Source of the DNA: Oikopleura dioica
Taxonomy: Eukaryota > Animalia > Chordata
NCBI GenBank assembly: GCA_907165135.1
Contig: OU015568.1
Span: 12,090,001-12,154,000, forward strand
Reading direction: 5' to 3'
DNA: 64,000 bases
Part shown: positions 7,508 to 60,100 of the stretch, one piece after another
Position numbering within the stretch: the first letter of the stretch is position 1
Layout: every line of letters starts with the position of its first letter
Notes under the pieces: model-generated
What the model saw: the letters and a program-made list of their open reading frames with translations, nothing else
Told to the model about the DNA's origin: nothing
Databases searched by the model: none
Program-made: the position numbers and the translations under genes

Positions 7508-10240
7508 TTACAAAATTATACAGCAGGAATCTTCAGAATTAGCTTCAGGGTTTTTCTGAAGTTCATTTCGAGCTCTATCTTCCTTTTTGTGATACAATTT
7601 CAAAATATACATGGTCAGGAGCACCAAAATGACCGATACGATGACAGATGCAAATGCTGGGGCCCAGGATAATGGCTAAATAAAACGTCAAGTTTGCTGT
7701 TCTTGTGTTAAAAATACCTCTGAGCATCCGATTTTGACCCCGTTCAGAGCTTTTACAAGGTCATTCGATTTCGTGCAATCATTGTTGTCCAAAAACGTGC
7801 AGGTTTTCGGAAGAGTTAGAAATTTTCCTTCCATACAATTGTACGAAACACTCTTCTCTTCCTTGGTCATTTTTTCAAGGTAGACTGGCTCGTAGTATTT
7901 TGCCTTGTAAGCATCAATCTGAGGCCAACCTTGAATAGTCGAATTCGGATGTTTCAAGTGAACGGCAAGGACGAACAAGAGTTCTTGTTCATCGAAAAAA
8001 GCTTTGCTCATGTTGGTTTTCAACATCACATTTATTCAAAACAAACATATGTTAAATGTCTCAATCCATTCCTTATCACGTCATATCCGTCTTTTTCCCG
8101 CGGTTCCTCTTGCCACCCTTCTTTTTGCCAGGCATTGATGTACCAAGATTCAAAAAGGACCGGATAATCGGCATTAATCTCGTAGTGAGGGTATGAGTAA
8201 AGCAAGCCAGAGGGCGTCACAGCAACGACTCTGTATTGACCAGGACAAGTTTCTGATTTTCTCAAAATTTCTTGCAGTCCATCGAATCGGTAAATATCGA
8301 CGAGAGCCTGAGTCGTCAGACAGCTTTTCTGAAAAAATGATGTTTTCTTTTTCTACAGAACTTACATAATCTTCCCAGCATTCCTTCATTGTTGCTTTTC
8401 CACAGTTTACGTTCAAATTGATATATTCGTCCCCCACATCAAACGCATCGAGCATCTCATCTCTTGACTCGAACTCATTGAATCCATCACTGAATCTAAG
8501 TTCCTCGCCTCCGGGTATTTTCTCGACCGCATCCATGAGGAGAACTGGTGAGTTTTTCTCTCCGAAGCAGACTTTTTGATCCATAATCAAACTGCACTCT
8601 GATTCCTCAATGTTAAAAAGAGGATCGGCGCCCGATTCATAAAGTTGTGCCCACTCATCTAATACAGCTTTTTCGCCCTCATGATACTTTACAACCATGA
8701 GTAGAAAACTAGCAGCTGAGTTAACTTTGAATATCTCGTAGTCATCGTTCGATTTAGTGTCTTCAGATCCCTCAGATATCATTTCTTCAACGTCCTTCGC
8801 AAAATCTGAAGAGTCCCAATTTTCATAGAAAAAATCCATGTCATCGTATGATAAACTTCCGCAATTATCTGTCTCCTCTGTTTTATTCTTTAATTTCTCT
8901 TCGTATTGCGGTGTGAGAGTCTTTGGATGGTAAACGAAATTGCCAAAGGAGTCCAGGAAGAAGATTTCTGATTTGAATTTCGAGTCAAAAATGCCCTTGA
9001 ACAGTGGATTCTTCAATCTTGGGCCTCTAGTCAAGATATCGATGTCCAGCCCTATGATACCCGTTTCCATCAATCGAGAGACTGTATTTATTTCCCCGAA
9101 TCTAAATGCATCGTTGTATTGAAGACCGAGCACCGAGGTGCTGTTTTCTTCACTCGGCTTCTTTGTCAATTTACTGAATTTGAGATCCCACAAAGTCGCG
9201 TTCAGAGAATTAAACTCTTCTAGCGTCTCCTTGAAGCTCCAATCTTCTCCTAAACGAAGATCATCGTCTTCGCAGGTTAAACAAGCAGCTGAGCCATCGC
9301 AGGTTTCAATTTCTTCCGTAAAGTTGCACTTGTGAAGATCTTCCAAAACTTCGAAAATTCTCGTCCCCTCGAACCCGCTAAAGCTCTTTTCTTTGCAGTC
9401 TTCTCTGAACTGAACTTTTTTGTTTCTTCCTTCTTGGGCGTCAAGGAACCACGGTCGAATTCGGGGGTCATAAGCATTGCACGAAGTGGGAGTAGACTCA
9501 CAGGGGTAGACGTAGTGATAACCGTCGAATGTGCCAAAATATATTCCTTTTAAAGCATCACCAATTGTTGCAGAAGCATTTTCAAATGCATCGCGAATAG
9601 GAGATATTAAGGTTTCGTCATCACAACTGAAATAAGGATCGAACTTTTTGAGACGGAAAAATCTGCATCTACGCTTTTGGATCCCTTCCTGTACGTAGGA
9701 ATGTACGAATTAAACTGGTCAAAGGTCCGTGGCGAATTTGGCGAAACTAGTTCACACAAAAGCTCTCTTTCCGGAAGAATCGCTTCACGGCCATTTTTAA
9801 AATCAAGAGCGCCAGAATTCGAATCTGGATCAACTTCGAAGTTTTGCCTTTGATTTCCGCTAATTGAGCAGGACGACTGCCACTGTACTTTTACTTGCTT
9901 ACAGTTACCCGTAGGCGTCCGCTCAAATGCTTTCACCACGTCGTCGAGCGCGTCGTAAACTTTCATAAAATTTCTTTCGACGTCATCTTTTATTTGTTCG
10001 ACGATTCTTTTTGAATCCACTGGTTTCTTTGAACCTTCATTTCTTTACGCGTTTTTAAAAAGTGCTTTTTTACTCAATTGTTCTTGAAGAAAAAAAACGA
10101 GTCCTGAACTGCTCAGCAAAATTCGTTGGAAACTGTTTTTCAATTATCTTTCTACAAGTCTCTAATCTTGAATCCGACATTTTCATCGATTAAATTCAAA
10201 AAATAAAGAAGATGGACAGGAGTAGTGATTGAATTCGCGG
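7508..10240 (-). CDS. Cache-domain (alpha2delta/CACHD1-like) single-pass membrane protein; 5' end approximate
   Basis: The frame upstream of ORF 8174..9346 reads IYFGTFDGYHYVYP...AYDPRIRPWF, a Cache-type motif; second Cache-like segment FFLDSFGNFVYHP. C-terminal TM, then tail ending SCCIIL-stop at 7508-7510. Confidence 0.72.
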
Positions 10241-14407: not shown

Positions 14408-17400
14408 ATGAAGTCGAAAAGGCTGCTATATTTCTTTTTTCTTGTAGAGATTACAGAAGCACTGGACGAATGTAATGACCCAGCTCTCAATGGATGTAAT
14501 GATCGTGCTCCACATTTTTTAATTTCTTAGTGAGATGTTCTCTTTTAGTATATTTTCTCTTAAAATTTAGCAAATAAGAGCATGTCAAAAGACGGATTTT
14601 CCTGGCAATTCATGCACAGAAAATGATGACACTGTGCCACTTGATTATACCTGCACTTGTGATGAAGTTTCTTTTACCGGTACTGGCTCGATTTTTTGTA
14701 CAGATGTTGATGAGTGTAATCGCTTTCCGTATCCGTGTGGTGACGCAAGTTGTTTTAACACTCTTGGTTCTTACGAATGTGAATGTAGTAATCCTGATAG
14801 AAATGCGCTTATTGGAACATCACCATGGCAGGAGTGTATAAGCATGTGTGAGACAGGAATCCACTACTGCAGTCACGCTGGATGCAACTGTGTTCACGAT
14901 ATTAACGGTCTCACGTTTTCCTGTAATTCTGGATACGAGCTATCTGGTACTTATGATTGCGAAGATATTGATGAATGTCAGACGGGAGATCATGATTGCG
15001 GAAACGATCCTGGCATGACCTGTTATAATAATGTGGGCAGTTTCGATTGCATGTGCGACGGTGGATATGACTACACCGCTAATCCTACGCCAACCTGCAC
15101 TGATCAGAACGAGTGCACCCTTGGAACACATCAGTGCTGCGAAATCGGCTGCGATTGCAACAATATCAGCGGAGGATACACTTGTTCCTGTCAAGCTGGT
15201 TTTGAAACAGACAACACTCTCTACGGATGCAAGGATGTTGATGAATGTGCGACCGGAGTTCATGACTGTGGAACCGATCCTGGAATGAATTGCGTCAATA
15301 ATGTCGGCTCTTTCGATTGCATTTGCGATGAAGAATACAGTAATGCCTACAGTTTTCAAACCGGAAAAACTTGTGTCAACGTTGATGAATGCACTCTTAA
15401 TACTCACAACTGCTGCACTCATGCGGGTTGTTCCGGATGTACTGATACAGATCCGGGATTCACTTGTGCATGTGATGCTGGTTACCAAGGAGACGGAACT
15501 TCTTGCGCTGAAATCGACGAATGTGCGACCGGAGCTCATAACTGCGGAACGGATCCTGGTATGAATTGTGTAAATAATGACGGATCCTTCGATTGTATTT
15601 GCGATGAAGAATACAGTAATGCCTACAGTTTTGTAACCGGAAAAACTTGCGTCAACGTTGATGAATGCACTCTTAATACTCACAACTGCTGCACTCATGC
15701 AGGTTGTTCTGGGTGTACTGATACAGATCCTGGATTTACTTGTGCATGTGATGTTGGTTACCAAGGAGACGGAACTTCTTGCGCTGAAATCGACGAATGT
15801 GCGACCGGAGCTCATAACTGCGGAACGGATCCTGGTATGAATTGTGTAAATAATGACGGATCCTTCGATTGTATTTGCGATGAAGAATACAGTAATGCCT
15901 ACAGTTTTGTAACCGGAAAAACTTGCGTCAACGTTGATGAATGCACTCTTAATACTCACAACTGCTGCACTCATGCAGGTTGTTCTGGGTGTACTGATAC
16001 AGATCCTGGATTTACTTGTGCATGTGATGTTGGTTACCAAGGAGACGGAACTTCTTGCGCTGAAATCGACGAATGTGCGACCGGAGCACATAATTGCGGA
16101 ACGGATCCTGGTATGAATTGTGTCAACAATGACGGATCTTTCGACTGCATTTGCGATGAAGAATATAGTAATGCCTACAGTTTTGTAACCGGAAAAACTT
16201 GTGTCAACGTTGATGAATGCACTCTCAATACTCACAACTGCTGCACTCATGCGGGTTGTTCCGGATGTACTGATACAGATCCGGGATTTACTTGTGCATG
16301 TGATGTTGGTTATCGAGGAGACGGGACCTCTTGCGTTGACATCGACGAGTGTGATGAAGATACAGTAGCTAATCTCTGCGGTGCTGATTCGCTTCTTTCC
16401 TGCATAAATAATATTGGCTCTTATGACTGTAGCTGTCTCGACGGCTATGATATGGTCTTCGATAGTGGCCTCGGTGAAGAAACGTGTGTTCAAGTCGACG
16501 AATGCGTCGATGACAATCTTCACGACTGCGTCACCGGCTTTACGGGAATCTGCACTGATAAGGATCCTAATGTTGATGGTATAAAATTTGAGTGTGGATG
16601 CATTGAAGGTTTTTATGGAAGTGGTTTCGCCAATGGACAGGGTTGCATTCAGGAGCTCGACGAGTGTACAATGGGAACCCACAATTGTGCTGCTGATGCT
16701 GATTGCTTCGACACACAGGCTGCCTTTATTTGTACATGTCACCCTGGTTTTACTGATGATAATCTTGACGGAACAAGTTGCACGAATATTAATGAATGTA
16801 CAGATGGAACTCACAATTGTGCACCTGATGTAGATGGCGGCGTTTGCACTGACAACCCAGGAAGCTTCGAATGCTCTTGTGACAACTCAATTGCTTATGG
16901 AGATGGACTCGCTGCTGGAACTGGGTGTACACTCAAAGTTGACGAATGCGCTGATAACACTCATACTTGCGACGCCAATGCTGCCTGTACGGACACCCAG
17001 GAAGCGTACACATGCACTTGCAACGCTGGATATGACGGTCCTGGATTCATTTGTTACCAAGTCGACGAATGCGCAGAAAAAGGACTTGATATCTTGGGCA
17101 CTGCTGGTGTTCTTGTTGGCACAGAAACCAACTATGCTGATTTCGTTGCCCAGCTTGATACGATGTCAGGAATGGTCAACGGAGTCGTAGGTTCATTCCA
17201 TGGAGCACTTGAAGATCAATTCAATATTGAATCAACATTCACTATTGGAAATACAGGCGGTGCCGAGAAAGTTCTCTTCAGCTTGACTGGTGCGACCAAC
17301 CAGTTTATTCCAGATCTACCAGTCGACACCAGAGACTATTTTATGAGCTTTGAAGTCGTCCAAGACGCCTGCTCCGATCCTGCACAAGATGCGTCGAGTA

Positions 17401-18689
17401 CTTGCACTCTGACCGTAGCTTATGAGACATTCTTGGGTGGATCAGAAAAGAGCGCAACGATACCGTACACTCTCAATAATACTTGTACGGACTATACTGT
17501 GGCGGACGGATGTCCAATGTCAGTCATGATTTTGATCAATCGCCAGGGCATAGCTATTAATGGTACCGTTACTTATTCCATGGTTGTTGATTTGATCACT
17601 CCTGACGGAAACGTCGCCTCAACTGCTTTTGTCGACAATAACGACCACAGAATGACCGAGTTCCGATTCGTCAGAGAAGGTGATTCAGCCGCGCTTATCA
17701 GTTCTTTCTATATTAATCAAGCTGGGTAAGACACATTTTGCTTCCTATTTGTGAAATTTTCCTAGATCTGAAACCAACAACTGCGATGATGACGGTGGAA
17801 TCTGCACAGATACAATAGGCTCTTTTACATGTGATTGTGATCTCAGCACACATTTTGACAACAACAGTGACGAGCCCGGAACCGACTGTGTTGGCCTTGT
17901 CGACGAATGTACTGTTGGTGGACATGATTGCCACCCGACCGGTGGAGTGTGCACCGATTTGGACGATGGTTGGTCCTGCACCTGCGCCACGACACACTTC
18001 GATCTTAATCCTGATGATCCTGGAAAACAGTGTGATCAATTACTACCTTGCGATGCTCGACTTATTGGCGACGTTTTTGATGATTCCGCCCTCAGTCCAC
18101 GGGGCTTTTGGGATTGCAAGTAAATAGAAGTGTAAAGTAAGTCAGCCTTATGTAAAATTTATAGCCGAGGAAGCAAGAAAACAACTTGTAATTATATCTG
18201 CCCTGTTTCTGAAGCAGTCGGTGTTACAGCTTCATGCAAGCACAAAAGCGGGTTGTGGAGAGATCCTACTCGTCCATTGACCTGTAATTTGCCACCAACA
18301 TGCGATCTTGCTGCTCTTGAGACTGAAATCACCGATTTCTTGGGCCGCATCGGATCAAGTCAGTGCTAAATTGATTCAACACAATCTCATGTTTTAAGCT
18401 TATGTTTTCAACGAAAACGACTGGCAGATTGATGGACTTCAGGAGGACAATTTCCTTAGAGGAAGATGGAATTGTGGAAATTCCTTCTTTACCAAGAAGA
18501 TTCAATTCAGCGTTAGAACCAATTTATAAGTGCCACTTCTTTATAAGTATTTAGTGCAACCGAAAAGATGGAGGTACTCGAGCTGTATGGAAATTCAAGG
18601 GTGATCCGAGTGATCATCCAGACGTCTGTCAAGGAATCTTCCGAAGCGAAGGCCTTGAAGTTCGATCGAAATACGTCAAAAAAGCTTGA
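14408..18689 (+). CDS. Secreted calcium-binding EGF-repeat matrix protein (fibrillin/oikosin-like) with non-EGF insert and sushi-like C-terminus
   Basis: Signal peptide MKSKRLLYFFFLVEITEA at 14408; ORF 14634..17729 is mostly cbEGF (D-I/V-D-E-C...N..GSF.C.C); further EGF and Cys-rich exons to the stop at 18687-18689. Confidence 0.88.
15244..16347 (+). repeat. Coding tandem repeat, 276 bp (92 aa, two EGF modules) x about 4
   Basis: Near-identical units; shadow ORFs start at 15658 and 15934, exactly 276 bp apart. Confidence 0.93.
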
Positions 18690-31028: not shown

Positions 31029-34000
31029 ATGGGCTCAAAGCCCTCAAAATCAGTAGGTCCGCTTGAACACTTCAACATAGCCGAGATTCAAGCAATCGAG
31101 GACGAAAATGAATCTGCTCGAGCCAAACAGGTACGAAATTATCTTTGTCAATGATTTTCATCAGTTTAATAAGCTTTTGGTAATCAGACAAAGGAACCTC
31201 AGGCCAGAGTTCCAAAACACGCGTGCGTGCGTGCGCACGCGTGCGCGTGTTTGCGTGCGTGCGCACGCGCACGCACGCGCACTCGGATTTTGTGATTTGC
31301 TGCGCACGCGCACGCACGCGCACGCGAAGATTAAGATTGCGCACGCGTGCTTGATCGTGCGCGTGCGAAAAAAATTTTAAAAATCTTTTTTTATCTCTAG
31401 AATATTTATTTTTTTCTCCCCTGAGGCGTGTTTACATCGATTTGTGGAGACTTGAAGCATATTCGTGTCTCTAGAATTCAATTCTAGCTGTTTTTAATTG
31501 TGCTGATAGAGTCATTTTAAAATGGACACTCCTTGTTCATCATCAAAGAGAGCTCGATTGGACCGAGAAGAGATAAGAGATGCAAAACTTGAAAAGCTTG
31601 TCAAAGATTTTCAGGAACGCGTTTTTTTTGGTTAATTTTTTGGGATCCCCAATAAAAGCAAACTATATTTTTTTTTAAGTAATTTCAATTGGGGGCCCCA
31701 AAAATCTTTTTATTTTTAATCGTTGAATTGAGAACCCCAAAAATTACAAACACTTTTGTCAGGCGGACGGATTTCTTATCTCCGGATTCGAATATGAGCC
31801 TGCTGCCAAAGACGGATATTTTTACTGCATCGGAAAACGATGTGCTATTGGAAAAGTAAAAGCCTTACGCAACGGAAATGATCCAGTCACAAAATGGACG
31901 AAATCATCAATTGATCGTCATATTACCTCATGTCACAAGCCAGAAGCAACGAACCAACCAGATATACTGACTGCATTGAAAAATCCGAAAAAAGAACTTG
32001 ACCACTCGCGCGACGAAAAAAACCGAGTAGCTCAGCAAGTGACGTATCTATGTTCGGATTTGTATATGCCCCTGAGCAGCGTTGAAAAGTAAGAGAATTT
32101 TCTTTGGGTCCCCCAAATTGGGGGCCCCAATTTTTTTTTCAGGATAATTAATTGGGGGCCCCAATAATGATTATTTTCAGGGATCGCTTTAGAGAAGTAT
32201 GCCGCACGTTTTACGAACTTGGAGCGCAGAAAAAAAACGTCGAATCTCTTCTCGTGTCAACTTATTTCCTGGAAAAACAACTTGAATTTTCGGCGTGTGA
32301 GATTACGTCGAAAATTGCGTCAAAAATGGACTATCTTGTTGAAAAAGGTCTTATTCATGCTGAAATCGATGCTAAATGTGTTGGCGACAAGACAAAGGAA
32401 ACACAAGAATCAGCTCATGGAGTACTCCTTGGTAATTCAGATATTTGGGAATCCCAATAATTTTTTTAGGATTCTTACGCCAAGATGGTTCCAGAATATA
32501 TTATTTGAGCGCGTTCGATGCGTTGGATATAAAAGCTAACAAAGATTACAGCGAAGTGATAGCTGGTAACTTAAAATAACATTATTTTTTGGGACTCCCA
32601 AATTGGGAGCCCCAATTTTTGGGACTCCCAAATTGGGGGCCCCAATTTTTGGGAACCCCAAATTGGGAGCCCCAAGTTTTCCGGAGCACGACTAACATAA
32701 ATATTGTTAAGCTCATGCTAGAAAGACTCTTCAAAAATATGGCATTCCGGAGGAGCAAGTCGAACTTATACCACTGAGCACAGATGCTGGTGAGGTCAAG
32801 GTTGGAAAGCTCATCTCGGATTTATCGTGCATTTGTATTTCGCATACATACAATCGTCTTGCGGAACATTATGTCGAATACGCACAGAAGTATTTCAATT
32901 TGGATACAAGATACGAAATAACATTAAAAAATTCGCGGAATCATCCGAAAAGCGATGTTCGAAAGAAGTTGCCGCTATCCACCCTCCAGAATGCCTTCGA
33001 AGTCTCTCTGATTATTTCTATGGACGACCGCTTAATCAGCAAGACAAAATTCTGTACGAATCGATCGATTACAAATCAAGAAAACATAAAACGTATCCAA
33101 TTCTTCATGTAAAATAATTAACATCTATTGGGTCTCCCAATATTGGGAGACCCATTTTTTTTTGTAAGCTTCATATTTGGGGCCCCAAAATAAAACGTAT
33201 TTCTAGCGAACATCGGCCATCAGATGGGAGAAAAATCTCTATAATCTAAATGCAATGTTGGTATGGGAATCTACTGTCAGAGAATTCTCGTTGCCTCATC
33301 ATCCCTATAACTATCTTTTGCCTTCGCCATTGCCAAGCTTCAATTACATAAGAGCCAAACGACTTATCGGAAACGAAATAATGCGTCTAAATCTTGCTCT
33401 TCAAAAACTTCGTCATCAGTTGTGGACCAAGTTCACTCTTTCTCAATCCTGACAAAGTTCCTAGCATCCTGCGCCGAAGGCATAACAGACACAGATTATC
33501 AGGTAACTTAAAATAACATTATTTGTTGGGACTCCCAAATTGGGAGCCCCAATTTTGGGAGCCCCAAATTGGGGGCCCCAAGTTTTCCGGAGCACGACTA
33601 ACATAAATATTTTTAAGCTCATCGTCGGCAAACTTGCGAGAGGAGCCTATTCCAAACTCTCAGCACTTATGTTTCAAGAATTCTGGCTTGACGGAAAGAG
33701 TATTACGAAAACAGATCCTTGCAGAATCGCCAATGTTAATCTCAGTGGAGAATATCTGTTCCCGCGTCGCCAAAAACTAACCTTCGGATTCTTTACGAAG
33801 CATTTGAATGGGTCAAAAGATGGATTTTTCAAAGAACAAGCAAAATATGTTACAGAAAGATGCAAGGACTTTCAAAAATATGCCCGCGAATACATCACTA
33901 TGATTGACCGAAAAATGCCAGGAGACATCGCGGAGCCTGTGTTTCAGCAGTCTAATGGAAATGATTCCTCTGATGAGGATGATTTATCAAGCAGTCAAAG

Positions 34001-36226
34001 TCAATCATCTTCTCTCTCAACAAGCGTTGAGAATCTCACACTCTCTCCAGTGGAAAGAGAAATGCTCAGGTACAATTAATTTTATTCGACAATAAAAAAA
34101 TTAAATATTGGGACTCCCAAATTGGGGGCCCCAAAGTTAACAATAAAAAAATTAATATTGGGATTCCCAAATTGGGGGCCCCAAAGTTAACAATAAAAAA
34201 ATTAATATTGGGACTCCCAAATTGGGCGCCCCAAATTTGACAATAAAATAATTAAATTTTGGGACTCCCAAATTGGGGGCCCCAAATACAACCTTCAAAA
34301 AAAAATAATTATTGGGAGCCCCAATTAAATGAGATAACTTCTTATCTTTCCAGATATGAAGCCCTGACAACGGAAGAGTATAACCGCACACAGGTGAACA
34401 TCAGAGTGAAGAAGGACGATGTTAACTATGTTTCGATATCAATGAAAGCTTTTTGGAATGACGAGAAAATTGCTTCGGAGTTTCCTCGACTACGAAAAAT
34501 AGCAGTCAAAGTGAGTTTTTAAAATTCTGTTATGATAATTCAAAATCAAAGGTTCTTTCATGCCCGGCAGGGACTCAAGAGCTGGAGAGAAGGTTCGGAG
34601 GAACTTCGGAGTATATAAGAAATCCGAAAAGAAATAGAATCAGCTGTGGACGAGTGCTTGAGCTTGCTCAGTATCAACAATACGAATCTGTTCTAAGTTA
34701 TCTTGATAATTTGCCTTAATTTGAAAAAAAAAATGTCTCTTCTAATTTATAAATAAAGTATATTATTTTTCACAAATTGACTTTCGCACGCGCACGCACG
34801 CGCACGCGAAATTTTGGATTTTGACGCACGCGCACGCACGCGCACGCGAAAAATTTTCGTTTTTTGGAACTCTGCCTCAGGCATAGGAGTATCATTTCTC
34901 GGCGGACACTAGGACACAGGAAGACGATCAGGTCATCGATTTTTGAGGATGTTGCCCTTGAAGACTTGTGTGAAGCGGTAAGACCAGTTGGCACTCGCAT
35001 CAATGCTTATTTTCTCTTCAGTCTGGATTAGAGTGCGATGAGGTCGAAAAAACTGGCCGCGTAAAAGCAAAATGCAAAGAAGAAACTCTCAGAAGACTAA
35101 CAACTCATGAAGCTACTAAAGAAGTTTTTCAGGTAATAAGGCTCGCTAAATTTAATATCTACCAATGTCATTTTTAGAATAAAGAGTCGTTTCAAAAATT
35201 CATGGACAGTAGAATGGGAACAAAAGAAGAAAACCCAGCAGGAGGAGGAGGAATGCTGCTGAACCCAAATTTTAGACTCGATATCACAAGATCAAACTTG
35301 TCGTTTACAAGATCAAACTTAAGCCTTTCATATGTAAGTACAAATGTAAAAATTAGTTAACTAAGGTTTATCTTTGCAGTCAAAGAGCAACACAGAAGTT
35401 GCAGAACAAAGTCATGAATCATCAGAATATAAACGAGCAAATACAATAAACAACCCGCTAAAGCCGTGGAGAGAATATGAAATAATGCCAAGCATAAGAG
35501 ACATGACAAGCGAACACACACTTGACGATTGTAGGAATGGGGTAAAACGAACATTTCTGCCAAATTGGTTCTACTAAAATTTCAGACTGAAATAGTAAAA
35601 TCCCAAAAAAAAGCAAAAGACGAGTATCAAAGATCATGGAACCTATGAAACAAAAACCATTATCCGAAGAGTTTTATACGTAAGTTTATAAATATCTTTT
35701 ATTTTAAAAGATAGTATATCTTTTTACTTGTTACTGATAGTTTTTAGACCAAATTTTGGACGGACTTCAATAGGGCCAATGATGGAGAGTGGCATTTCCA
35801 TCACTCGAACCGACACGAACAACAAGAGTCATTCTATCCAACGCGGTCGGAGTAGCTACATAGGGCCAGCTGGGCGCAAATCGGTGCTTACGAACCATGT
35901 GACGGGCAGATCAAGTGTGATAACGGATAGGAGTAGAAGACAAAGTATCGCGATAGACGCTCTCAAGGACCGCCGGACAAGCAAGAAAAAGAGAAAATCA
36001 ACGATGGAGCCGAAGACGATCTACTCGCTCGATCAGGACTTTAAAAGCACTCTTTATACGACCATCAGGTATAGAAGTGTAAGTATTTGCTAGCAACTTT
36101 TTATTTAGTCCCGAAAACCGGAAAAAAGTGTCGATCGCATGTCGCGTGAATGAAGAAACACTGATGATGGCTGAGTCCATGACGAAATCTAAAGAAAAGA
36201 AGAAAAAAATATGTCCGTTCTTCTAA
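31029..36226 (+). CDS. Host gene of unknown function interrupted in exon 2 by the hAT insertion
   Basis: Exon 1 31029-31130 (MGSKPSK...), 34 bp intron, exon 2 from 31165. Removing 31205-34882 restores the open frame FNKLLVIRQRNLRHRSIISRR. Further small exons reach a last exon ending KEKKKKICPFF-stop (36224-36226); whether all downstream exons belong to one gene is inferred. Confidence 0.6.
31522..34719 (+). CDS. hAT transposase, 9 exons, about 747 aa if two single-base frameshifts are corrected
   Basis: Exons 31522-31620, 31763-32088, 32181-32431, 32470-32565, 32712-33108, 33207-33502, 33618-34069, 34354-34510, 34552-34719. BED-like finger (YCIGKRC..SIDRHITSCH), LQKYGI..STDAG, CISHTYNRL (CxxH), AIRWE, and dimerisation motif FWNDEKIASEFPRLRKIAVKVLSCPAGTQELERRF. 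Confidence 0.9.
31640..34325. repeat. Dispersed intronic palindromic 13-mer TTGGGnnnCCCAA, about 29 copies in transposase introns 1-7
   Basis: Counted by eye, including degenerate copies: intron 1 x3, intron 2 x3, intron 3 x1, intron 4 x6, intron 5 x3, intron 6 x4, intron 7 x9. None in intron 8. Confidence 0.92.
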
Positions 36227-37336: not shown

Positions 37337-40300
37337 TTAGTAAAGATAATAATAATCAAAAGTTTCGATAGGACAAAGTTCCGTTTCACATGGTTCGCTT
37401 GTATGAATTTTGTAAAAAGTATTCGTGAGTTTCCAGCTTGCGAAGTCACCAACCGGCACTCTCTCTCGTGAACGGGAGGATTGACCACAAGTTGCGCTAA
37501 AAAATGACGAAAAATAACATTCCCTATTTCGAACCTGCATTCGCCCCATTCTGTCCAACTTGAAAAGGCACATTTAGGAATCGGCGGAATCGCCAGCCAC
37601 TCTGCGGCAGTATCTTTGCGGGTCATCGGAACAACTCTGATGGACCCTCTTGCTGACAAGTAAAAATTACCACCAGGGACGAGAATTCGCGTCCATGGAA
37701 TATCCCCAACGTCTTCGATCAACATTTCGAACATCGTCAACTCTTCTTCTCGGGGACCGAATCCTTCCATCCCATACATTGTAAGATGCTTTTTGTAATC
37801 ATCACTGTATCCCATGTAAAATTCGCCCGAATTAGTTGTGAACTTTAACCGAACATTTTGGAAATCAGATGATTCTGGCGTGTCAAAACAAGTGAGGGTA
37901 AGAGTGGAGTCAATATCGTCGTAGAAACGCATTGTGTCAACCATGTCTGTTATACCATTTTGCATACCTAGACGAAAATGTTATCAATAAATCTATAAAA
38001 ATGTGAAAAACCTAGAAAAGCTGTTTCTTTGATTGAATAAAGCATAATGTCAGTGCCACAAAGATCTTTCATTGACGGCTGAGAAGTTTTGACACAATAT
38101 TCTGGCTCAATGTACTCCTTTGTTGTCGTCGTTGTCGAGGTAGTTGTTGTTGTTGATGTTGTGGAAGTGGAAGTAGTGCTGGTAGAAGTAGTCGTAGTTG
38201 TTGTAGATGTTGTTGTTGTGGTACTCGTTGTTGATGTTGTCGTTGTGGTCGTTGTAGTACTTGATGTTGATGTAGTCGATGTTGTAGTTGTCGTTGAGGT
38301 CGTCGATGTCGTAGTTGTTGTGGTTGTGGTGGTGGTTGTAGTTGTCGAGGTAGTTGAAGTAGATGTTGTAGTAGATGTTGTACTTGTCGTAGTTGTAGTC
38401 GTAGTTGTAGTCGTTGTCGTAGGCCAATTTCAATAAGAAGTTGAAAACTTAAAACCAAAAACCCCCCTTATTTTAGCTCATTGGAAAGAGCATGAAAAGT
38501 TATTCCAGAAAAAGTAGTCTTGTATGCTGAGTCATGTCCGATGACGTCACAGACATTGATTGAAGTTCCAAAAGTCCCAAAACTTTCGGACGCTCTCATT
38601 TTTATTCTACTGAAGGAAAATTAGAGCTCGAAGATGAAAAATGATCGTCTTACGCTCCTTTATGCAGGCCTGCAGAAATATATCTTATCAATAATGTAAA
38701 ACTATTTTTTCTAGAGATGTAAAAATTTTTTCGACTCAAATTTTTTTCATTTATGGTTGCCTGCGTAGAGTGGCCTAAGACGGTCAAAACCCTGTATCTA
38801 ATGTTTTTTTCCGAAAAATATTTTAGGAATAAGAGCGTCCGAAAGTTTAGAAAATCTGGGACTTAAGTCATCGATAATGACGTCATAATCTATGACTAAG
38901 TCACTTTACCTAATGTTTTCTAGTGTAACTTTTTATGGGGATTCCAATCAGACAATAAAAAGGGGGGCTTAGGATTTGAAATTTCTACTCCTTATTAAAA
39001 TTGGCCGTAGTCGTAGTTGTAGTTGTGCTTGTGGTGGTCGTTGTTGTTGATGTGGATGTCGTCGTGGAGGTTGTAGTTGTCGGTTCTACAGTTGCTTCTG
39101 TAGTCTCGTTTGTAGGAGAACGTCCAAAATCTTGTGGCTTTGGTGCGAATGCAATCGTTTCATTGGTGCATTCGTCCTCGGAACAAGTTATATTTCGTTT
39201 TCGCTCGCCTTCGCATTCTCCGTCCAGAATGCCACAGATAATGATACAATCTCGCTCCTCTACTGCCTCACAGCTCTCATCGCAATCGGTCGTTTGCCTC
39301 CAATCACTCCATACAGTGTACGCTTGTTGATTGCAAGGCCTTGAGATGGAGTGAAAATCAAGGAATATAACTTACTTACTTTGTTTCCACATCATTTATT
39401 CTATTGCCAGTGCACGTTTGAATACGCTGACTTTCTCCGCCACAACTTGAAGCAGAACATTCCGTCCAATCAGACCAAACACAGTCCTCTCAAAAGACTC
39501 TTTAGTAAACGTAGACTTACTCTAAGTACCGCATAATATCTCGTCCCCATAATTATCTAATGCAATACAGGGCTCGTTGTCTTCCTCAAGCATTCCGTAG
39601 CAGAACCTTCTTCTCTGTCTGAATCCATTTCCACAAACAGCGTCACAAGCATCCCATTCCGTCCAATCTGACTCACATCGAGTCGATTTGAAAGCATGGC
39701 AGTTTGCATCTCTAATGATATTTACTCCCAAAGTAGTTCGCTTTTTCACATTTTCGCGTGAACTGGCTGACCGAGGAACTTTCATCAATTGTGGATAAGA
39801 AAATCCATCAATGAATCTTCTGTGCTTAGCTTCATACTCGATTCTTGCTTCAGATTTACTCGGAAAATCATGAATTTTCCATAAATCTCTACCAACGCAA
39901 GGGCTACTCTCGCGGCAATGCGAACCAATAAGGCGATCCGATTCGTGATCCTGCAGTTCCTGTTAACTAGAATGCTTTCTTGGCTACCTTGATAAGTTTG
40001 AGATTGTAAGGCTCATTGTACAGAACGGCTACGTTTTCTCCATCCTCTGGGTTGCAGCAAATGGTCCACAGAGAGTCATCCGAGGGTTCGATGTTGTGCG
40101 ATATGGAACGATATGTGACTTTACTATCGTTCTCATTCTGAAAAAAATTTTGTTGCTTTATTCTCAACAAGCAAACCTTGTTTCTTTTTAATGTAAGGGC
40201 CCTTCTACGGTGATTAGTCAGCTGGACGACTTTATTGCAAATTGTCGCTTTCCATCGGATTTTTAAATGATATTTCATTCGATATAATTTCTTTTATCCG

Positions 40301-54093: not shown

Positions 54094-56017
54094 CTACTTG
54101 GCGCCCCATCCGAGCCAGCCGCCAAGTCTTCCTGTGATTCCTTTAGCTTCGGCGGACTGTTTCTTCTCCACTTTATCTTCGAGATTCGGGAAGTCAAAGA
54201 CTAAATTGACGGTGAGACGCATTCTAGAGGTAAAAGAAGCGAACCTTTGTCTCCGGCGATGTCAAAAAGTGTCGCTTTCGCGGGAATCGGCTTCAACGCA
54301 GGAGGGAATTCAATTGTCCCGAATTGAGCGCCGAAATCGCTGAGATTCTTGAGCACGTTTTCTTTGTCGAATGAGCTGTCTGAAATTTTTCGGTGAGGGG
54401 AGAAGGCTCCTGTTCCCGAATACCTTTTTGAGTAGACTGAGTTGCGGGGAGTACAAGCGCAGCTTGAATTGAAGAAGAGAATGATTGAACTTGAGAGGAG
54501 ATCGATGAGTGAAGAGTTCTGGTTGCTTCGCGTTTCGGCTCCGACGCTTCAAGACATTGACGAGCTTTGAGAGTCAATGCGCCTGCTTCTTTTAGTTTTC
54601 CCATTTCAAACGCCTTTCAAAATCGTTGAGCATCCGTGATCTACTTAAGATTTTACCTGTTGGGATTGGTAGTATCTACAGGCAGCCAAATACGTGTTCT
54701 TTTCTGAGTCGAGCTCATCTCCAAGCTCAGAGTTATCAGCTTCGTAGCATTTCTTGATGAATTCAGAAATATACTGGACAGTTTGCTCGTAAACACGAGA
54801 GAGCTCGTTCATTTTCGATGCGTTTGAGGCAATGATTCCATATCGACCTGAAACATGTTAAAAAGAGTGCGTCGAAAAACGCCTTACCGAGTGTAACTTC
54901 CAACTTGATATGGTTCAAATAAAGGAAAAGATCATTCTGCGGTGTCTGACCCTTTTCAATTACAGTTCTATGAGCAGCATCAAGTCTAAGCTCCCCTTTG
55001 ACTGTGTCGATCGCTTCTCCAGCTTCCATCAGCATTTCTACGTATTTATCCTGAAGCTCTTCCGCAGCAATATCGCCGATCCCATCCATGAACTCGCGAT
55101 AATTGAGCAAAAAGACCCGGACGGACTCGTTTTTCACTGCAATCTTTCTTCCACGCCACTCGGTTACGTTCAAATTTTCCGATTCTTCTATTTTCAACTT
55201 GGCCAAGTGCTCCGAAACTTTTCCATCGATCAGCTGGTTGCCTTTGCCGATAAAGTCCTGCATCTTTGCTCCATCGGATGACTCGTTCAAATTGTACTGG
55301 CAGTAGCGGAGAGAAGGCTCGATCTCTTGCGACGCCTTGGAGTACACTTCTGCTTCATCAGCTGCTAAAGTTCCAGCGAGAGAATTGTAAATCGTTTGCG
55401 CGGATTTGAACTTGGCAAAGCAGACAGGCCAGTCTTGCTGCTCGAACGCCCAAGTGGCGGTGATAAATGCACAGTAAGCTTGGACTTCGAGTGTTGTTCG
55501 CGAGTCGCATTGATCAGCAATAGATTCGAGGAGGGATGTAAGTTCGTTAGCTTTCTTGGAAGCTTTTCGGAGCTTGTTGCGCATGTGATGCCGAGAGCGA
55601 GCTCCGTCGTCGTGCTAGAAAAAAAAGGTGTAAAAATTCATGACTGCTGTTCGTTTACCTTGAGCTCCATCGAGTAGGCCCAATCCTGCTCGATTCCCAT
55701 GATGCATAAGTGGACGAAAAGAGCATTCTGCTTCGCTTCATATTCAGTGACTTTTCGAGGCACAACGCGTTTCTTTTCGCCCTGGCGAAATTTCAGAAAC
55801 TTGCGAATTCGTCGGCAACGGTTGTTGCAGTAACGACGGTAGCGCTGATAATCGCGGTGACGGAGACCATGTTCTTGCTGAGCGGCTTTGAGCATTTGGA
55901 GGACTAGCGGTAATTTATCAGCGAGAGAACAAAATTTAAGAAGTTACCTGGAATATTGTAGAGTTGAATTTCCTCAGCTTCTGCATCTTCAACGACTTGC
56001 ACCTTCTCCGCTGTCAT
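54094..56017 (-). CDS. SRP68: Signal recognition particle subunit SRP68
   Basis: LKAAQQEHGLRHRDYQRYRRYC..RRIRKFLKF, LEVQAYCAF, IEPSLRYCQYN, C-terminal GITGRLGGWLGWG. Confidence 0.93.
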
Positions 56018-56185
56018 TCTAAAGGACAGAGATAAGGATTTTTCAGCAGATTTACCGATAGATCCTCAAGTTCGAGCGTAATCTTTCCCGTTATCGCGAA
56101 CGGTTTTGATAAAATCTAAGGCGCCCTTGAGTTCGGTGGCAGAGTAAGTTCGAAAATTTGTTTCAATCATTACTGAGCATTAAAA

Positions 56186-56785
56186 ATGAATTACGGAGCA
56201 TTAAAAAGAGACTCGAGAAGCCGAAAAGAGTACAGTATGATCTTGAAGATGCAAGCTCTTTTGGCCGAGCTCGGCCAGAATCGTCAAAATGGAGATGTTT
56301 TCTACTTCTCCAGAGATTATCCCGGATTCCGAAGATATGCTCGAAAAGAAAACGACGTTTCGATTTTGATGACAGACTACGTATTTGCTGCTAAATTTCT
56401 CTCAATTTTGTACAGAAAACAAAGTCCACCCGCTATTGGAACGAGGTTCATCACTGACAACCGGATGAAAATCTTTATAAAACACCTTGAACAGCTCAAG
56501 AAAATTTCGACTATTATCGGCCGAAGCAAAGAAAAACTCCAAAATTTTGGCGAAAAAGTGGAAAATTTGATCAAAACCAAGTTGCCCAAAGAAAGCACTA
56601 AAATTTGCCCAATTTGCTTAGCGACCTACGATAGTGAAAATAAGCAGCATTTCTGCTTGTCATCTTGTGGTCATCTCTTTTATACTCCGTGCTTCAACAG
56701 GCTGGAAACTCTGAGGCGACCGATTGGCAAGAAAGATGTTACAAAAAGAAATAGTGTCAAACCTTATCTTGAAACTCATTTCTAA
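56186..56785 (+). pseudogene. Intronless ORF with degenerate RING finger
   Basis: CPICLATY...SCGHLFYTPCF..LRRPIGKKD: the CxxC after CGH is YxxC and the final CPxC pair is missing. Confidence 0.5.
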
Positions 56786-57189
56786 AAGCTCAGGTATTTT
56801 TCGTATAAAATCAGTGAATTAATTCGTAAAATTAAGTATGCGAGTCAACTTCAAATCGTCTCACCAGAAATGGATTTTCAATCGACATGGCATAGACTGC
56901 ACATAAATACCCTCCTGTAAAAATTTATTTAACTTAAAAATGTACATTTTCTATCTAAACATTGTGAATATTACTGTTTTGTATATCCTTCTAAATGTAA
57001 CCGAAATAATATATGACATGTCCACTTGATAAGTTGTTTTGGCACTTATTCGTAAAAAAGGGGTCAATTTCAATAAATATTAATTTATTTGAATGAAGGC
57101 ACACGCTTGTTTTTTGTAGCAGCAATTATACAAAAAAGAAAAGCTTGAAACTGATAACTGAAGGTTTTTGAAGTTAAAGATGAACGTAA

Positions 57190-60100
57190 TTGAAGAATAA
57201 GGATTTGAGCAGTGAGAAGTGCGTCTGTTGGAGGCCAGATAAATTTGGAGATACTTTGAAGTCGGGTATTTCTCGTAGCTCTTCGAGTTTTGAATTGAAA
57301 ATATCGTAAGATAATAGAAGACTGTCCCCTCCCCAGCGAGGCGTTCCGAGGAAGTTTAGGGTAGGAGTTTTCGCATTGCTAGAATGTCTTTTATTTACGA
57401 TTCGGACTTGAAACTTACCTTAGACTTGGAAAGACAAATGCTTCAAGAGGGAATGTAACTTGCTTCAAAAAAGCATATTCTGCGAGTAAGCAAACATCCG
57501 TCTTAGAGACACAATCCTGTGACGATTCTTGAGATGTAGCCAAGGGTTGAGGGAAGAATTTCGAGGCTCTTTTCATTTTTCCATTTTCTCTCGTAATCGG
57601 CAAGTTTCCAGTCAGCACCAATTGCTCCAAGCTGAGGTCAAGCTTTGTCGCCGTTGAGATTGAGAATAAACTGCTGTCACTTCTGTTCGAATAGAGGTTT
57701 AAACCTTGTTGGACGTCGGAGAATGTTTGGAATGATAATTTCATCGTTTGTGGCAAGATTCGCGAGGTCATCCTTTTTGTGCGTTCCAAGTGGTACAAGT
57801 GTGATCAACTCGTCTGGTTCCAGGGATGAGATTTTGCAAGCGTTTCGATGTGGATATTTCCCGCCAATTACGAGCAAGTAGAGGGCATCTGAACTGATAT
57901 GTGTGCGTATGGTTCTTTGGCGCCTCTCAACCGATTTTCGCGAAAAGAGATCCACCAGGCACAAGTTCGCGCCCGTGTGATGCTCTGCTCTGATAATTGG
58001 ACAGCTGAAGTGCTCCCAGCTGTCTGAGTTCTTGCTGTGTCGGCAACTGTAGAAGTCAGAAATATATTCATTCCAATCGATTTTAGAACATGAGAAGCGG
58101 ATAAAGTCCATACCCTTGGCTGGCCCTTCCTCACCCGCGGAGTACTTGCCGTAACCGCCAATGATGTAGATAAAATCTCCGGCGCTCTGGAGTTAGGTGG
58201 CGAATTTGTTCAAGGTTTGAACAAAATTATCTTCATAAACGAGCAATCGAAAATATTGCCACCTTTCCTGATGATGAACTGTTTGAACTCCCGCATTCCA
58301 CACCCTTCTTGGCAAAGCAGGGAGCGAAAACCACACAGCATACGTAACAGAATATGCCCAAACTGACTTTTTGAGCTCTCCTCCGAAAAATATCAGCATG
58401 GTCCCGAAATCTGACTGTAAAGGCACCATATGGCCAGCATCGCCGGGAAAGTTCATGTCGGGAATTTCAGTAATGAAGTTGAAATCTTGGTAATAAGGGC
58501 TTTGTTGATAGATACACGGCTTGTTTATTGAATTTCGCGCGACCAAAAAGATTTTTTCGGGAAATCGCGGGTTCGATCTGAAACCATTCTCACCAGAAAA
58601 GAGTGCATCCCAGCACTTCACCGTTTCAAGACCAAGTTCATCCATGAGCCAGGACCAGTGCTCATCATTTTTCCAATTTTTCGGGGGCGTTTCAGTCACA
58701 TAAGTCGACATTGACGTGACAAGGCGTGAGTAGTTCTCGTCGTCGTCACTCATATTTGCGTCAAGCCACTTTTTAACGCCGGAAATGATCGCACGGTCGT
58801 CAAGAATATAGAGGGTAGTCCTTCTAATGATCCTGCGGAGAAGAGTCTCGCTCAGCTGCACCCATAAACGAGATTCGATTGCTGAGGTGAAATGAACATC
58901 TATGAAGTCGTAGAGGCGATCAGTGTTGAATACGGGCAGTTCGAAGATTTCCTTCATGCCGATAATATATAGGGCAAAGTCAGGATCGGTTTCGTTTTCG
59001 CAAAAGGTCTCAATTACTTTTTCCATAACCCTCGGCTCCAGTAGAAATACTCCAAGACTAAAGACCTGTAGATAATCATGAATCGTTTCTGGAATGCGAC
59101 CTTCTTTTATGTCAACAGCTACTTTGACCGCCTGGCTGTCAAAAAGTGGCAGTTCGACTTCCGTTTCGTTCCAACATCTCCTTGCCCAATTGAAATATTG
59201 AATTCCAGTGAGCGATTCATTCGGCAGCGATAAAACGCAATCGGAACAAATGACAAACGTGGTTTGGACTTCCCCCTCTACGTCTTCGTAAATATCGGAA
59301 ACGCAATCAGAGAAGGTATCTCCGTCTGAGTCATATTCTAGCAACTGTTTCTTTTCAACTTCTTCAACCCTGTCGATGTGTCTATAAATTCGTTCGTTAA
59401 CTTTCGCGACATTAGAGATATCCTCATTGTTGATTTCAACATAAAGGATGCCTGCTTCATTTTCATTCCTCTCTCCTCTCTTTTCCTCAAGTGCTGGAGT
59501 CGGACAGTAGTAATTTTCATAATTCAACGGCCAAACAGCAAACGAGCCATTCATTGACTCATCGAACGCGCACCACCAGGTTCCGATCAGCACGGCGCCT
59601 CGAAAACTTCCCTTATACTCGATGGTAAGGCCTGTGCTGAGGTAGTTTTGCGAGAAACGGAAGTTTTCACGTCGGAAGGCAGTGCGAGGGTGTATTGAGA
59701 ACGGCTGGTCTGCATCAATTCCCAGGCCGATTACTGAAGGGATGAACTGGAATCTAAAACCAACGGTTGAAAGATAGAACTTCAAGTGAGTTTACCTGGC
59801 TTTTATCTCTGAGTGCCCAACATCAATCATTTCTCCATTATCCAACGACCTACCAAGCGCAAATCCCTTGTATTCAATAAAATCCTGATAAGCAAGCAGC
59901 GCCATTTCAAATGGAACGAAAAACGCTTTTGGCGGAATTTCAAGCGCCGCTGATTTCACTTCATTTTTACACAAACTTCTAAAGCCAGGGAGCATTCGTG
60001 TTCGATAAGCAGCAATGATATTGATGACGTTGAGGTCGTAGTTTTTCAGATTATAGTTGAGGAGGAAATTAAGGGTGTCTTTCACTTCGGTTGGCAGCGA

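Follow-up and report, generated by a model that had tools for sequence, protein, structure and literature searches.

The origin of new introns is still debated, and Oikopleura is among the few animals in which there are signs that introns have propagated recently. Near-identical introns have been reported in O. dioica, and intron transposition by reverse splicing was proposed for them (Denoeud et al. 2010, as summarized in PMC3609843, PMC3443670, and PMC4122922). Same-gene intron duplications are known from fungi (PMC3609843), and in the fungus Mycosphaerella homologous introns lie mostly at pre-existing positions (PMC3443670). The introner-like elements of fungi and the introners (Micromonas, protists) are thought to multiply and then to decay to ordinary introns (PMC3609843, PMC4540971, PMC9860276, PMC11282704). 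The locus described here is a single hAT transposon in a window of 64 kb, that is, the whole stretch of DNA that was analyzed. Seven of the eight predicted introns of its transposase gene carry the palindromic 13-mer TTGGGNNNCCCAA.

The locus resembles the O. dioica near-identical introns, as these are described in the later summaries, in its genus, in its GT-AG borders, and in having two introns (introns 4 and 6) that are alike while their exons are not. Compared with the same summaries, it differs in that a transposase gene is affected in seven of its eight introns, and in that a short palindrome in tandem units, not the whole intron, is conserved. Older positions are occupied, as in Mycosphaerella (PMC3443670), here in introns 2, 5, and 6. 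The element was compared with P0001, an annotated O. dioica hAT transposase from the Y-specific region of OKI2018_I69 (CAG5101471.1). P0001 belongs to the same protein family and has four intron positions in common with the element, whereas its introns (n = 9) are all plain, 40-45 nt long, and without the motif. Among the seven introns with the motif, intron 3 measures 38 nt and the other six measure 92-284 nt. Such greater length than the norm, together with canonical splice signals and predicted stable folds, is also found in introner-like elements and introners (PMC3609843, PMC4540971, PMC9860276, PMC11282704). The copy numbers of introners, however, range from tens to thousands, spread over unrelated genes, whereas the repeat here was found in one gene with about 108 kb sampled, and the intron borders here are without TIR or TSD signatures.

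The MITE-derived non-canonical introns of Fritillaria borealis (Henriet et al. 2019, as cited in PMC11282704) are likewise found in a larvacean tunicate, with inverted repeats and a link to DNA transposons. In the account given there, they have non-GT/AG ends, TIRs at the borders, TSDs, and species-specific positions in host genes; in contrast, the hAT element has GT-AG introns, internal palindromes, and three ancestral positions. A MITE-derived intron of the Fritillaria or Micromonas type was rejected as a candidate, since the palindromes are internal and the borders have neither TIR nor TSD. Internal inverted repeats, which are shown on maps of Tol2 vectors, can sit within a hAT element (PMC1635535). 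Tol2 differs in having a single long repeat pair and not a multi-intron family. We take its internal repeats to lie in an intron. The locus is a local example of the reported O. dioica near-identical introns and not a new kind of system. The earlier note on this DNA had put forward an element-encoded intron system that it did not recognize as described, and to call it undescribed is too strong given near-identical introns, same-gene duplications, and structured introner-like elements (PMC3609843, PMC3443670, PMC4122922). The present scope is one locus of a phenomenon that has, in general terms, been reported before. Within 3.7 kb, the locus combines the copying of a complete intron (the 4/6 pair), repeat-bearing introns at ancestral positions, candidate new introns, and tandem growth, and the outgroup gene P0001 fixes which intron positions are old.

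The element is 3,670 bp in length (31205-34874) and carries all motif-bearing introns. It is flanked by an 8-bp target-site duplication, CCTCAGGC, the right copy (34875-34882) being identical to the left one (31197-31204). The 13-bp left TIR, CAGAGTTCCAAAA (31205-31217, forward strand), matches the right TIR (34862-34874, reverse strand) perfectly. The hAT TIR consensus starts with (C/T)A(A/G)NG, and CAGAGTTCCAAAA agrees with it at both ends of the element. Repeats of the GCGCACGC type were observed subterminally on the left (31218-31382) and on the right (34782-34848), and the left ones are presumed, from hAT biology, to be the transposase-binding region. Hence the hallmarks of hAT elements are present (8-bp TSD, TIR starting with CAGAG, and subterminal repeats), and the perfect TIRs and TSD indicate that the insertion was recent.

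The transposase gene is on the forward strand and begins with an ATG at 31522. Exon 1 (31522-31620) is followed by exon 2 (31763-32088), a BED-like Cys/His region aligned by BLASTP to P0001 residues 66-147 (E = 3e-5), exon 3 (32181-32431; BLASTP to 151-236, E = 2e-11), and exon 4 (32470-32565). Exon 5 (32712-33108) corresponds to the putative catalytic core (DDE, RNase H-like; phmmer to 271-332, E = 1.9e-5). Next come exon 6 (33207-33502), exon 7 (33618-34069; BLASTP to 502-624, E = 4e-18), exon 8 (34354-34510; BLASTP to 660-695, E = 1e-10), and exon 9 (34552-34722; BLASTP to 696-736, E = 1e-11), which ends with the stop codon TAA. Exons 8 and 9 thus align to P0001 660-736, the hAT dimerization region (PF05699), and exon 8 forms the start of this C-terminal region; the exon 8 piece alone gave no Pfam match. 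P0001 itself matches the Pfam profile PF05699 above the cut-off at residues 675-729 (E = 2.5e-8), matches the Hermes transposase (E = 0.005), and lies inside its own transposon with subterminal repeats. All exons of the element were colinear with P0001 at about 30% identity, which supports, at the level of sequence, the earlier proposal of a hAT transposase with eight introns. The intron coordinates proposed with it give no continuous frame. With these coordinates, the reading frame is broken twice in the predicted coding sequence: the end of exon 5 (phase 2) does not fit the start of exon 6 (phase 0), and a frameshift lies within exon 6 at about 33357-33400. The sequenced copy of the element may be dead or mis-assembled.

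Exact TTGGGNNNCCCAA was found 26 times in the window, compared with 0.08 matches expected from shuffles. The copies span 31640-34324, and all of them are inside seven introns of the element: 2 in intron 1 (31621-31762, 142 nt), 3 in intron 2 (32089-32180, 92 nt), one in the center of intron 3 (32432-32469), 6 in intron 4 (32566-32711, 146 nt), 1 in intron 5 (33109-33206, 98 nt), 4 in intron 6 (33503-33617, 115 nt), and 9 in intron 7 (34070-34353, 284 nt). Intron 8 (34511-34551, 41 nt) is without the motif. When one arm mismatch was allowed, 3 more distinct degenerate copies were detected, at 31728 in intron 1 and at 33143 and 33176/7 in intron 5; all 29 exact and degenerate copies are located within 956 nt of introns. 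In the remaining 2,714 nt of the element (exons, UTRs, and termini), none was detected even when 2 arm mismatches were tolerated. The exact motif was absent from the other 60.3 kb of the window, where one 1-mismatch match and eleven 2-mismatch matches represent background. It was also absent from about 48 kb of other Oikopleura DNA (L001, L010, L011, and L012), the motif-free Oikopleura DNA sampled amounting to about 108 kb of a genome of roughly 65-70 Mb. These counts bear out what the earlier note had described, namely 1-9 copies in seven of the eight introns, frequent doublets, whose order proved to be always the same, and no copy in the exons or the host introns of the window. Relative to the genome, the sample is small.

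Two basic forms of the repeat were recognized, a one-palindrome unit of about 38 nt and an inverted doublet of 27-30 nt. Three 38-nt units resemble one another, and introns 1, 2, 3, and 5 are built of similar units. The layout palindrome(s)-T9-spacer-palindrome is common to introns 1, 2, and 5, with an internal T9-AAG in intron 1 (31668-31679), T9-CAG in intron 2 (32131-32142), and T9-GTAAG in intron 5 (33155-33168). All nine CCCAA-A-TTGGG doublets, and the perfect inverted doublet of intron 5, point the same way with respect to transcription. The palindromes lie inside the introns, at a distance of 13-38 nt from the 5' splice site. At the intron borders, neither TIRs nor TSDs nor consistent flanking direct repeats were detected, apart from an 11-nt repeat at intron 5. 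Intron 4 contains 3.2 copies of a 30-nt unit (32586-32680) and intron 7 contains 3.9-4.6 copies of a 50-nt unit (34089-34324), and the units of these tandem arrays match at 92-93%. When the array span, taken from the motif coordinates, was subtracted from the intron length, 25-67 nt remained, which is close to the O. dioica median intron of 48-51 nt (PMC8008620) and to the introns of P0001. The long introns grew through amplification of the 30- and 50-nt units. RNA folds of introns 2 and 4-7 were far stabler than those of shuffles (z = -3.4 to -6.2), and z was -2.0 for intron 1 and -0.8 for intron 3.

Copying between introns is directly visible in introns 4 and 6. The two introns are 96.5% identical from the first to the last base, with 4 mismatches and one unit indel. 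The identity runs from the GT through the AG, and the exons on either side are unrelated, matching at 9/20 and 11/20 positions. In the comparison with P0001, introns 2, 5, 6, and 8 shared codon and phase with introns of the outgroup: intron 2 with that in codon 148, intron 5 by its 3' end with the phase-0 intron at 399/400, intron 6 with that at 499/500, and intron 8 with that at 695/696. No P0001 intron shares the position of intron 1, 3, 4, or 7, although one is 10 nt away from intron 4; these four may be lineage-specific, candidate new introns, judged against a single outgroup, with which gain and loss are inseparable. Because the introns of P0001 are motif-free, at least three motif-bearing introns (2, 5, and 6) predate the repeat; therefore, the repeat invaded or replaced older introns. 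The comparison with P0001 divides the idea of the earlier note that these introns descend from one founder. It holds for the contents, which share ancestry in the 4/6 pair and in the similar units of introns 1, 2, 3, and 5, but fails for the positions. Downstream of introns 4 and 6, the first 5 exon bases also agree (CTCAT), which is not predicted by pure reverse splicing.

We consider that intron-to-intron copying within the hAT lineage, followed by tandem growth in place, explains the locus with a probability of about 55%. A short repeat that resides in introns and forms hairpins, with the 13-mer as its core, would have spread from intron to intron inside one element lineage. It would have overwritten or invaded the existing introns 2, 5, and 6 and may also have founded introns 1, 3, 4, and 7, and the 30-nt and 50-nt tandem units would have multiplied in place, probably via slippage at the palindromes. 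The likeliest copying route appears to be intron transposition, in which a spliced intron would reverse-splice into the same transcript, often at a used junction, and reverse transcription and recombination into a DNA copy would follow. No demonstration of reverse splicing in vivo is on record (PMC3443670). The arms are likely kept because the hairpins would compact oversized introns for a spliceosome tuned to introns of ~45 nt; alternatively, the hairpins may take part in the copying step. Only one copy of the element family was found anywhere, so that this history is reconstructed from a single locus and a single distant homologue. If more copies are present in the source genome, the order of events and the RNA- or DNA-level route would be readable from them.

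An origin at the DNA level is possible but rather doubtful. Gap repair from a sister or homologous copy after repeated hAT excision, with template switching at the short palindromes, would have copied intron patches and made inverted and tandem duplications, and selection on the transposase would have kept the intronic changes; otherwise, a tiny palindromic insertion element would have targeted AT-rich introns. A repeat that is limited to the transposon and missing from the host DNA of the window is expected with element-specific DNA breakage, and nested palindromes and tandem arrays are typical of slippage and template switching. Moreover, the doublet of intron 5 is a perfect inverted duplication, the 11-nt direct repeat brackets this intron (33086 and 33190), and the CTCAT that both exons share just downstream of introns 4 and 6 is consistent with a patch of DNA. 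The half-motif also resembles the TIR of the element at 10/13 positions (shuffle p about 0.01), but this likeness is effectively one non-independent sequence. The 4/6 identity, however, ends within 0-5 nt of both splice sites, which would be rare for a random patch, and the common orientation of the doublets relative to transcription and the units without flanking target-site duplications also speak against copying of DNA.

The arms TTGGG/CCCAA vary at 0/200 sites, compared with 11/60 in the center of the palindrome (p = 5e-8), for copies that were found by their arms, with ascertainment bias, and are not independent. Variable sites amounted to 18% in the center and 34% in the flanks. This invariance is the only hint of function that the sequence gives, and the arms are a simple target for splicing experiments. 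A selected cis-signal, which the earlier note had named as an alternative, would consist of hairpins gating splicing by tissue or stage, of long hairpins feeding a small-RNA pathway, or of sites for a dimeric protein, a host factor, or the transposase, as an intronic control array. With regard to intron retention of the P-element IVS3 type, tissue-specific and controlled by bound splicing repressors, the sequence is neutral. Fixed arms around a variable 3-nt center, with variable flanks, correspond to a hairpin whose triloop is free to vary or to a dimer site whose spacer is, and one motif is retained even in the minimal 38-nt intron. The predicted folds of the arrays are long, imperfect hairpins (about 25-50 bp), and the T/G pairing in ACT/GGC doublets would be tolerated in RNA only. 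Nevertheless, such a signal seems unlikely. Rfam gave no family at the gathering score, with sub-threshold, generic miRNA-hairpin matches only, and the homologous P0001 is without the motif, which is accordingly not needed for the family. Among the copies, there were no compensatory changes that would point to selection for pairing and not for the sequence as such. Furthermore, 1-9 copies per intron and their spacing look like neutral minisatellite growth, and this copy of the element is frame-disrupted.

It is likewise improbable, in our view, that the ~38-nt palindrome-cored mini-intron is a self-propagating introner-like unit, born in a DNA transposon and spreading via the transcript of the element. 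Such a unit would have both founded and overwritten introns, with the TTGGG/CCCAA hairpin as a cis-element for copying or for element-controlled splicing. If true, the birth, replacement, and growth of introns would all be readable in one gene of an animal.

That the segments are not functional introns, but local simple-repeat insertions in a dead copy with fortuitous GT...AG borders, is very improbable: the two frame disruptions and the exon pieces that are singly below the Pfam threshold would agree with it, whereas, once the segments are excised, the exons align with P0001 in a colinear manner and without gaps at each junction, annotated P0001 introns share codon and phase with four of the junctions, and the perfect element ends point to a recent insertion. 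Indeed, GT-AG ends and T-rich 3' ends were observed in all eight introns, and none of their lengths is divisible by three. The homology and the GT-AG ends together suggest that the segments are genuine spliceosomal introns.

The transposon at 31205-34874 is a DNA element of 3,670 bp. Perfect terminal inverted repeats of 13 bp (TIRs; CAGAGTTCCAAAA) bound it within a perfect 8-bp target-site duplication (TSD; CCTCAGGC), and subterminal GCGCACGC-type repeats lie at both ends. These are hallmarks of hAT elements, and the element was therefore read as hAT. Single exons of its gene gave no match in Pfam; hence, the family assignment was made through a homologue. When exon 5 was searched by phmmer against 1.84 billion representative proteins, the sole match was P0001 (CAG5101471.1), a 764-aa protein from the Y-specific region of O. 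dioica OKI2018_I69, in which PF05699, the domain for hAT dimerisation, is recognised (E 2.5e-8) and which also matches the Hermes transposase. The window exons are colinear with P0001 at an overall identity of ~30%: exon 2 aligns with residues 66-147, exon 3 with 151-236, exon 5 with 271-332, exon 6 with 401-450 and 464-497, exon 7 with 502-624, exon 8 with 660-695, and exon 9 with 696-736. No second copy of the window family was found in the protein collections, either by phmmer with exon 5 or by word-based searches with P0001 and exon 7. P0001 itself lies inside a transposon with 22-nt subterminal repeat arrays (GGGACTTATTTTACACAGAAAA) in inverted orientation (4698-4848 and 7790-7893 of its locus, L001), and this transposon belongs to a different hAT family.

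Subsequently, the eight predicted introns were examined (31621-31762, 32089-32180, 32432-32469, 32566-32711, 33109-33206, 33503-33617, 34070-34353, and 34511-34551). Once exactly these segments are excised, the coding sequence aligns with P0001 without gaps at every junction; all eight have GT-AG ends and T-rich 3' ends. None of their lengths (142, 92, 38, 146, 98, 115, 284, and 41 nt) is divisible by three, for which the chance expectation is ~4%. Furthermore, four junctions coincide with P0001 introns in codon and phase: intron 2 (codon 148, phase 2), the 3' end of intron 5 (399/400, phase 0), intron 6 (499/500, phase 0), and intron 8 (695/696, phase 0). On these sequence grounds, we take the eight segments to be real introns. 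The reading frame of this copy is broken twice: exon 5, which ends in phase 2, does not fit the phase-0 start of exon 6 (33100-33110), and there is a frame change within exon 6 at about 33357-33400. The two disruptions could be real lesions, which would be very recent given the perfect TIRs and TSD, or single-base assembly errors.

The repeated motif is a palindromic 13-mer with TTGGG/CCCAA arms and a 3-nt centre. An exact pattern search of the 64-kb window for TTGGGNNNCCCAA gave 26 copies versus 0.08 expected, all within 31640-34324. When one mismatch was allowed, three further distinct, degenerate copies were found in the same region, together with one unrelated match at 29955. By compartment, all 29 copies fell in the 956 nt of predicted hAT introns. 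The remaining 2,714 nt of the element held none, even with up to two arm mismatches, and the 60.3 kb outside it showed background only (one 1-mismatch and eleven 2-mismatch matches). The eighth intron (34511-34551, 41 nt) is motif-free. The earlier note had described one to nine copies per intron in seven of the eight introns, usually as doublets, and had noticed none in the exons or in host introns of the window; the exact-match counts bore out the first point, the doublet form proved correct, and the compartment scan agreed with the absence from exons and host introns. The motif was also absent from ~48 kb of other Oikopleura DNA (the P0001 locus and three further loci, L010, L011, and L012), and no described hAT or palindromic intron motif was found in the Oikopleura literature. 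A doublet scan of JGI metagenome contigs returned eight unrelated sequences (other satellites, a plant-like contig, and bacterial contigs), none with hAT similarity. In two JGI contigs (L003 and L005), which are not Oikopleura-like and are without hAT similarity, TTTTGGGTCTCCCA-type satellite units contain the half-motif. The half-motif matches the hAT TIR at 10 of 13 positions (shuffle p ~0.01), a comparison of effectively one sequence and so a lead only.

The nine P0001 introns are 40-45 nt long, and the motif occurs nowhere in the 12.7-kb locus. Motif-bearing introns 2, 5, and 6 stand at the positions of such plain P0001 introns. As these positions are common to hAT lineages of only ~30% identity, they predate the lineage split, whereas the repeat copies are still 92-96% alike. 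We infer that introns 2, 5, and 6 were already present when the repeat invaded or overwrote them, and so do not owe their origin to it. The other motif-bearing introns, 1, 3, 4, and 7, have no counterpart at the same position in P0001 (the offset is 10 nt for intron 4 and about 22 nt for intron 7). Because all four of these lineage-specific introns carry the repeat, they may be gains by repeat-bearing introns; alternatively, they may have been lost in P0001, the single outgroup.

Copying between introns was most evident for introns 4 and 6, which are separated by four substitutions and the presence or absence of one 31-nt unit. Their identity runs from GT to AG, whereas in the flanking exons only 9/20 and 11/20 nucleotides agree. 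Introns 1, 2, and 5 have a common layout of palindrome(s), a T9 run, a ~12-nt spacer, and a palindrome. The internal T9 run has an acceptor-like YAG end (31668-31679, 32131-32142, and 33155-33168), so that each of these introns resembles a pair of consecutive units. A length of 38 nt with one central palindrome is common to the second half of intron 2, the second half of intron 5, and all of intron 3. Tandem growth is seen in intron 4 (30-nt unit, 3.2 copies, 92% matches) and intron 7 (50-nt unit, 3.9-4.6 copies, 93% matches). When the array span was removed, 25-67 nt were left per intron, which is near the O. dioica median of 48-51 nt (PMC8008620) and the length of the P0001 introns. The earlier proposal that the introns descend from a single founder is thus supported for their contents, which share ancestry, and fails for introns 2, 5, and 6, whose positions are older than the repeat.

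The best-supported reading is that a hairpin-forming, intron-borne unit spread among the introns of this hAT lineage by copying and was then tandemly amplified. The copying route would be intron transposition through reverse splicing, the mechanism put forward for near-identical introns in O. dioica (PMC3609843, PMC3443670, and PMC4122922). This route fits the way in which the likeness of introns 4 and 6 stops exactly at the splice sites, the single orientation of the doublets, and the limitation of the motif to introns. It also fits the use of pre-existing positions, which has been reported in a fungus for homologous introns (PMC3443670). A less probable alternative acts at the DNA level, with template switching during gap repair after hAT excision; it would explain the confinement of the feature to a transposon, and it fits both the CTCAT that forms the first five exon bases after introns 4 and 6 and an 11-nt direct repeat on both sides of intron 5.

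Gene conversion seeded by the 13-mers was rejected as the main homogenising force because 13-mers are too short to seed homologous recombination. hAT excision footprints were dismissed by reasoning as the palindrome source, since footprints duplicate the 8-bp target directly and the units differ. A recursive splice site in intron 1 was also discarded: the apparent AAG/GTAATT junction shares its G and so is not AG/GT.

The doublet consists of a 13/14-mer and its inverted copy, which match perfectly in intron 5. Predicted folds were much more stable than those of shuffles, with z values of -3.4, -6.2, -5.1, -4.5, and -5.5 for introns 2, 4, 5, 6, and 7, respectively. With respect to transcription, a single order is kept by all nine CCCAA-A-TTGGG doublets (introns 2, 4, 6, and 7) and by the inverted doublet of intron 5. 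Among these ten doublets, variable sites numbered 0/200 in the arms, 11/60 in the three-base centres, and 41/120 in the flanks (arms versus centres, p = 5e-8, with copies that were found by their arms and are not independent). Ascertainment bias from the arms is limited, as only three degenerate copies exist. The doublets showed no compensatory variation, so selection on pairing is inseparable from selection on sequence, and no Rfam family was matched beyond sub-threshold hairpin noise. The invariant arms hint at a function: they might compact the oversized introns, take part in copying, or serve as a binding site. A resemblance to NF-kB, NFI, or EBF sites was considered, but the spacing or half-sites seem not to fit. 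The sequence neither favours nor opposes the analogy with P-element IVS3 drawn in the earlier note.

Near-identical Oikopleura introns and same-gene intron duplications are among the closest known kinds. Introner-like elements have length, structure, and canonical sites in common with the hAT introns; however, they occur in many genes, a spread that was looked for and not found for this motif in the Oikopleura DNA scanned. Fritillaria MITE-derived introns have TIRs and TSDs at their borders, whereas no such signatures were found at the borders of the hAT introns. Three things are new: the setting, a gene for a transposase in which seven of the eight introns take part; the short palindromic core, which does not vary; and a clear division of the intron positions into ancestral and lineage-specific ones.

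A plus-strand coding exon at 31029-31130, which begins with MGSKPSK (myristoylation-like), ends at GT ~75 bp upstream of the hAT element. The element apparently lies in sense orientation within the first intron of this host gene (context 31029-31130 and 34883-34970), and its eight splice-site pairs could interfere with splicing of the gene. The host lineage was assessed with a minus-strand BACK-domain ORF at 58193-59785, which shares 98% identity with an ORF of the ENA metagenome contig L010; in nucleotides, this contig and the window are 97.5% identical. When the window BACK protein is compared with the O. dioica OdB3 orthologue and with that of another ENA metagenome contig (L011 and L012), identity is only 69-71% (69% for OdB3). 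The order of the BACK-domain gene followed by SRP68 is conserved in the window (54763-59785), OdB3, and an ENA metagenome contig. The contrast between 69% and 98% identity indicates that the window comes from a distinct Oikopleura lineage, well separated from OdB3.

Other repeats were also observed in the window. A 56-nt minisatellite at 1-228 and 1058-2160 (about 4 + 20 copies, 97-99% matches) has within its unit a perfect palindrome with an 8-bp stem (GACGGCCC GAA GGGCCGTC); hairpin-cored tandem repeats are thus not unique to hAT introns in this genome. It is interrupted at 229-1062 by a segment of ~830 bp with perfect 18-bp inverted repeats (AAGGGTGTCCCCAACGAT / ATCGTTGGGGACACCCTT) and TTAA on both sides, which resembles a non-autonomous, piggyBac-like element that targets TTAA. 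A 1,031-aa open frame at 14634-17729 encodes at least 11 calcium-binding EGF domains and includes four 276-nt tandem copies of 95% identity (repeat 15243-16353). At 38194-38417, a 9-nt repeat (GTAGTTGTT) in about 24 copies gives low-complexity open frames on both strands.
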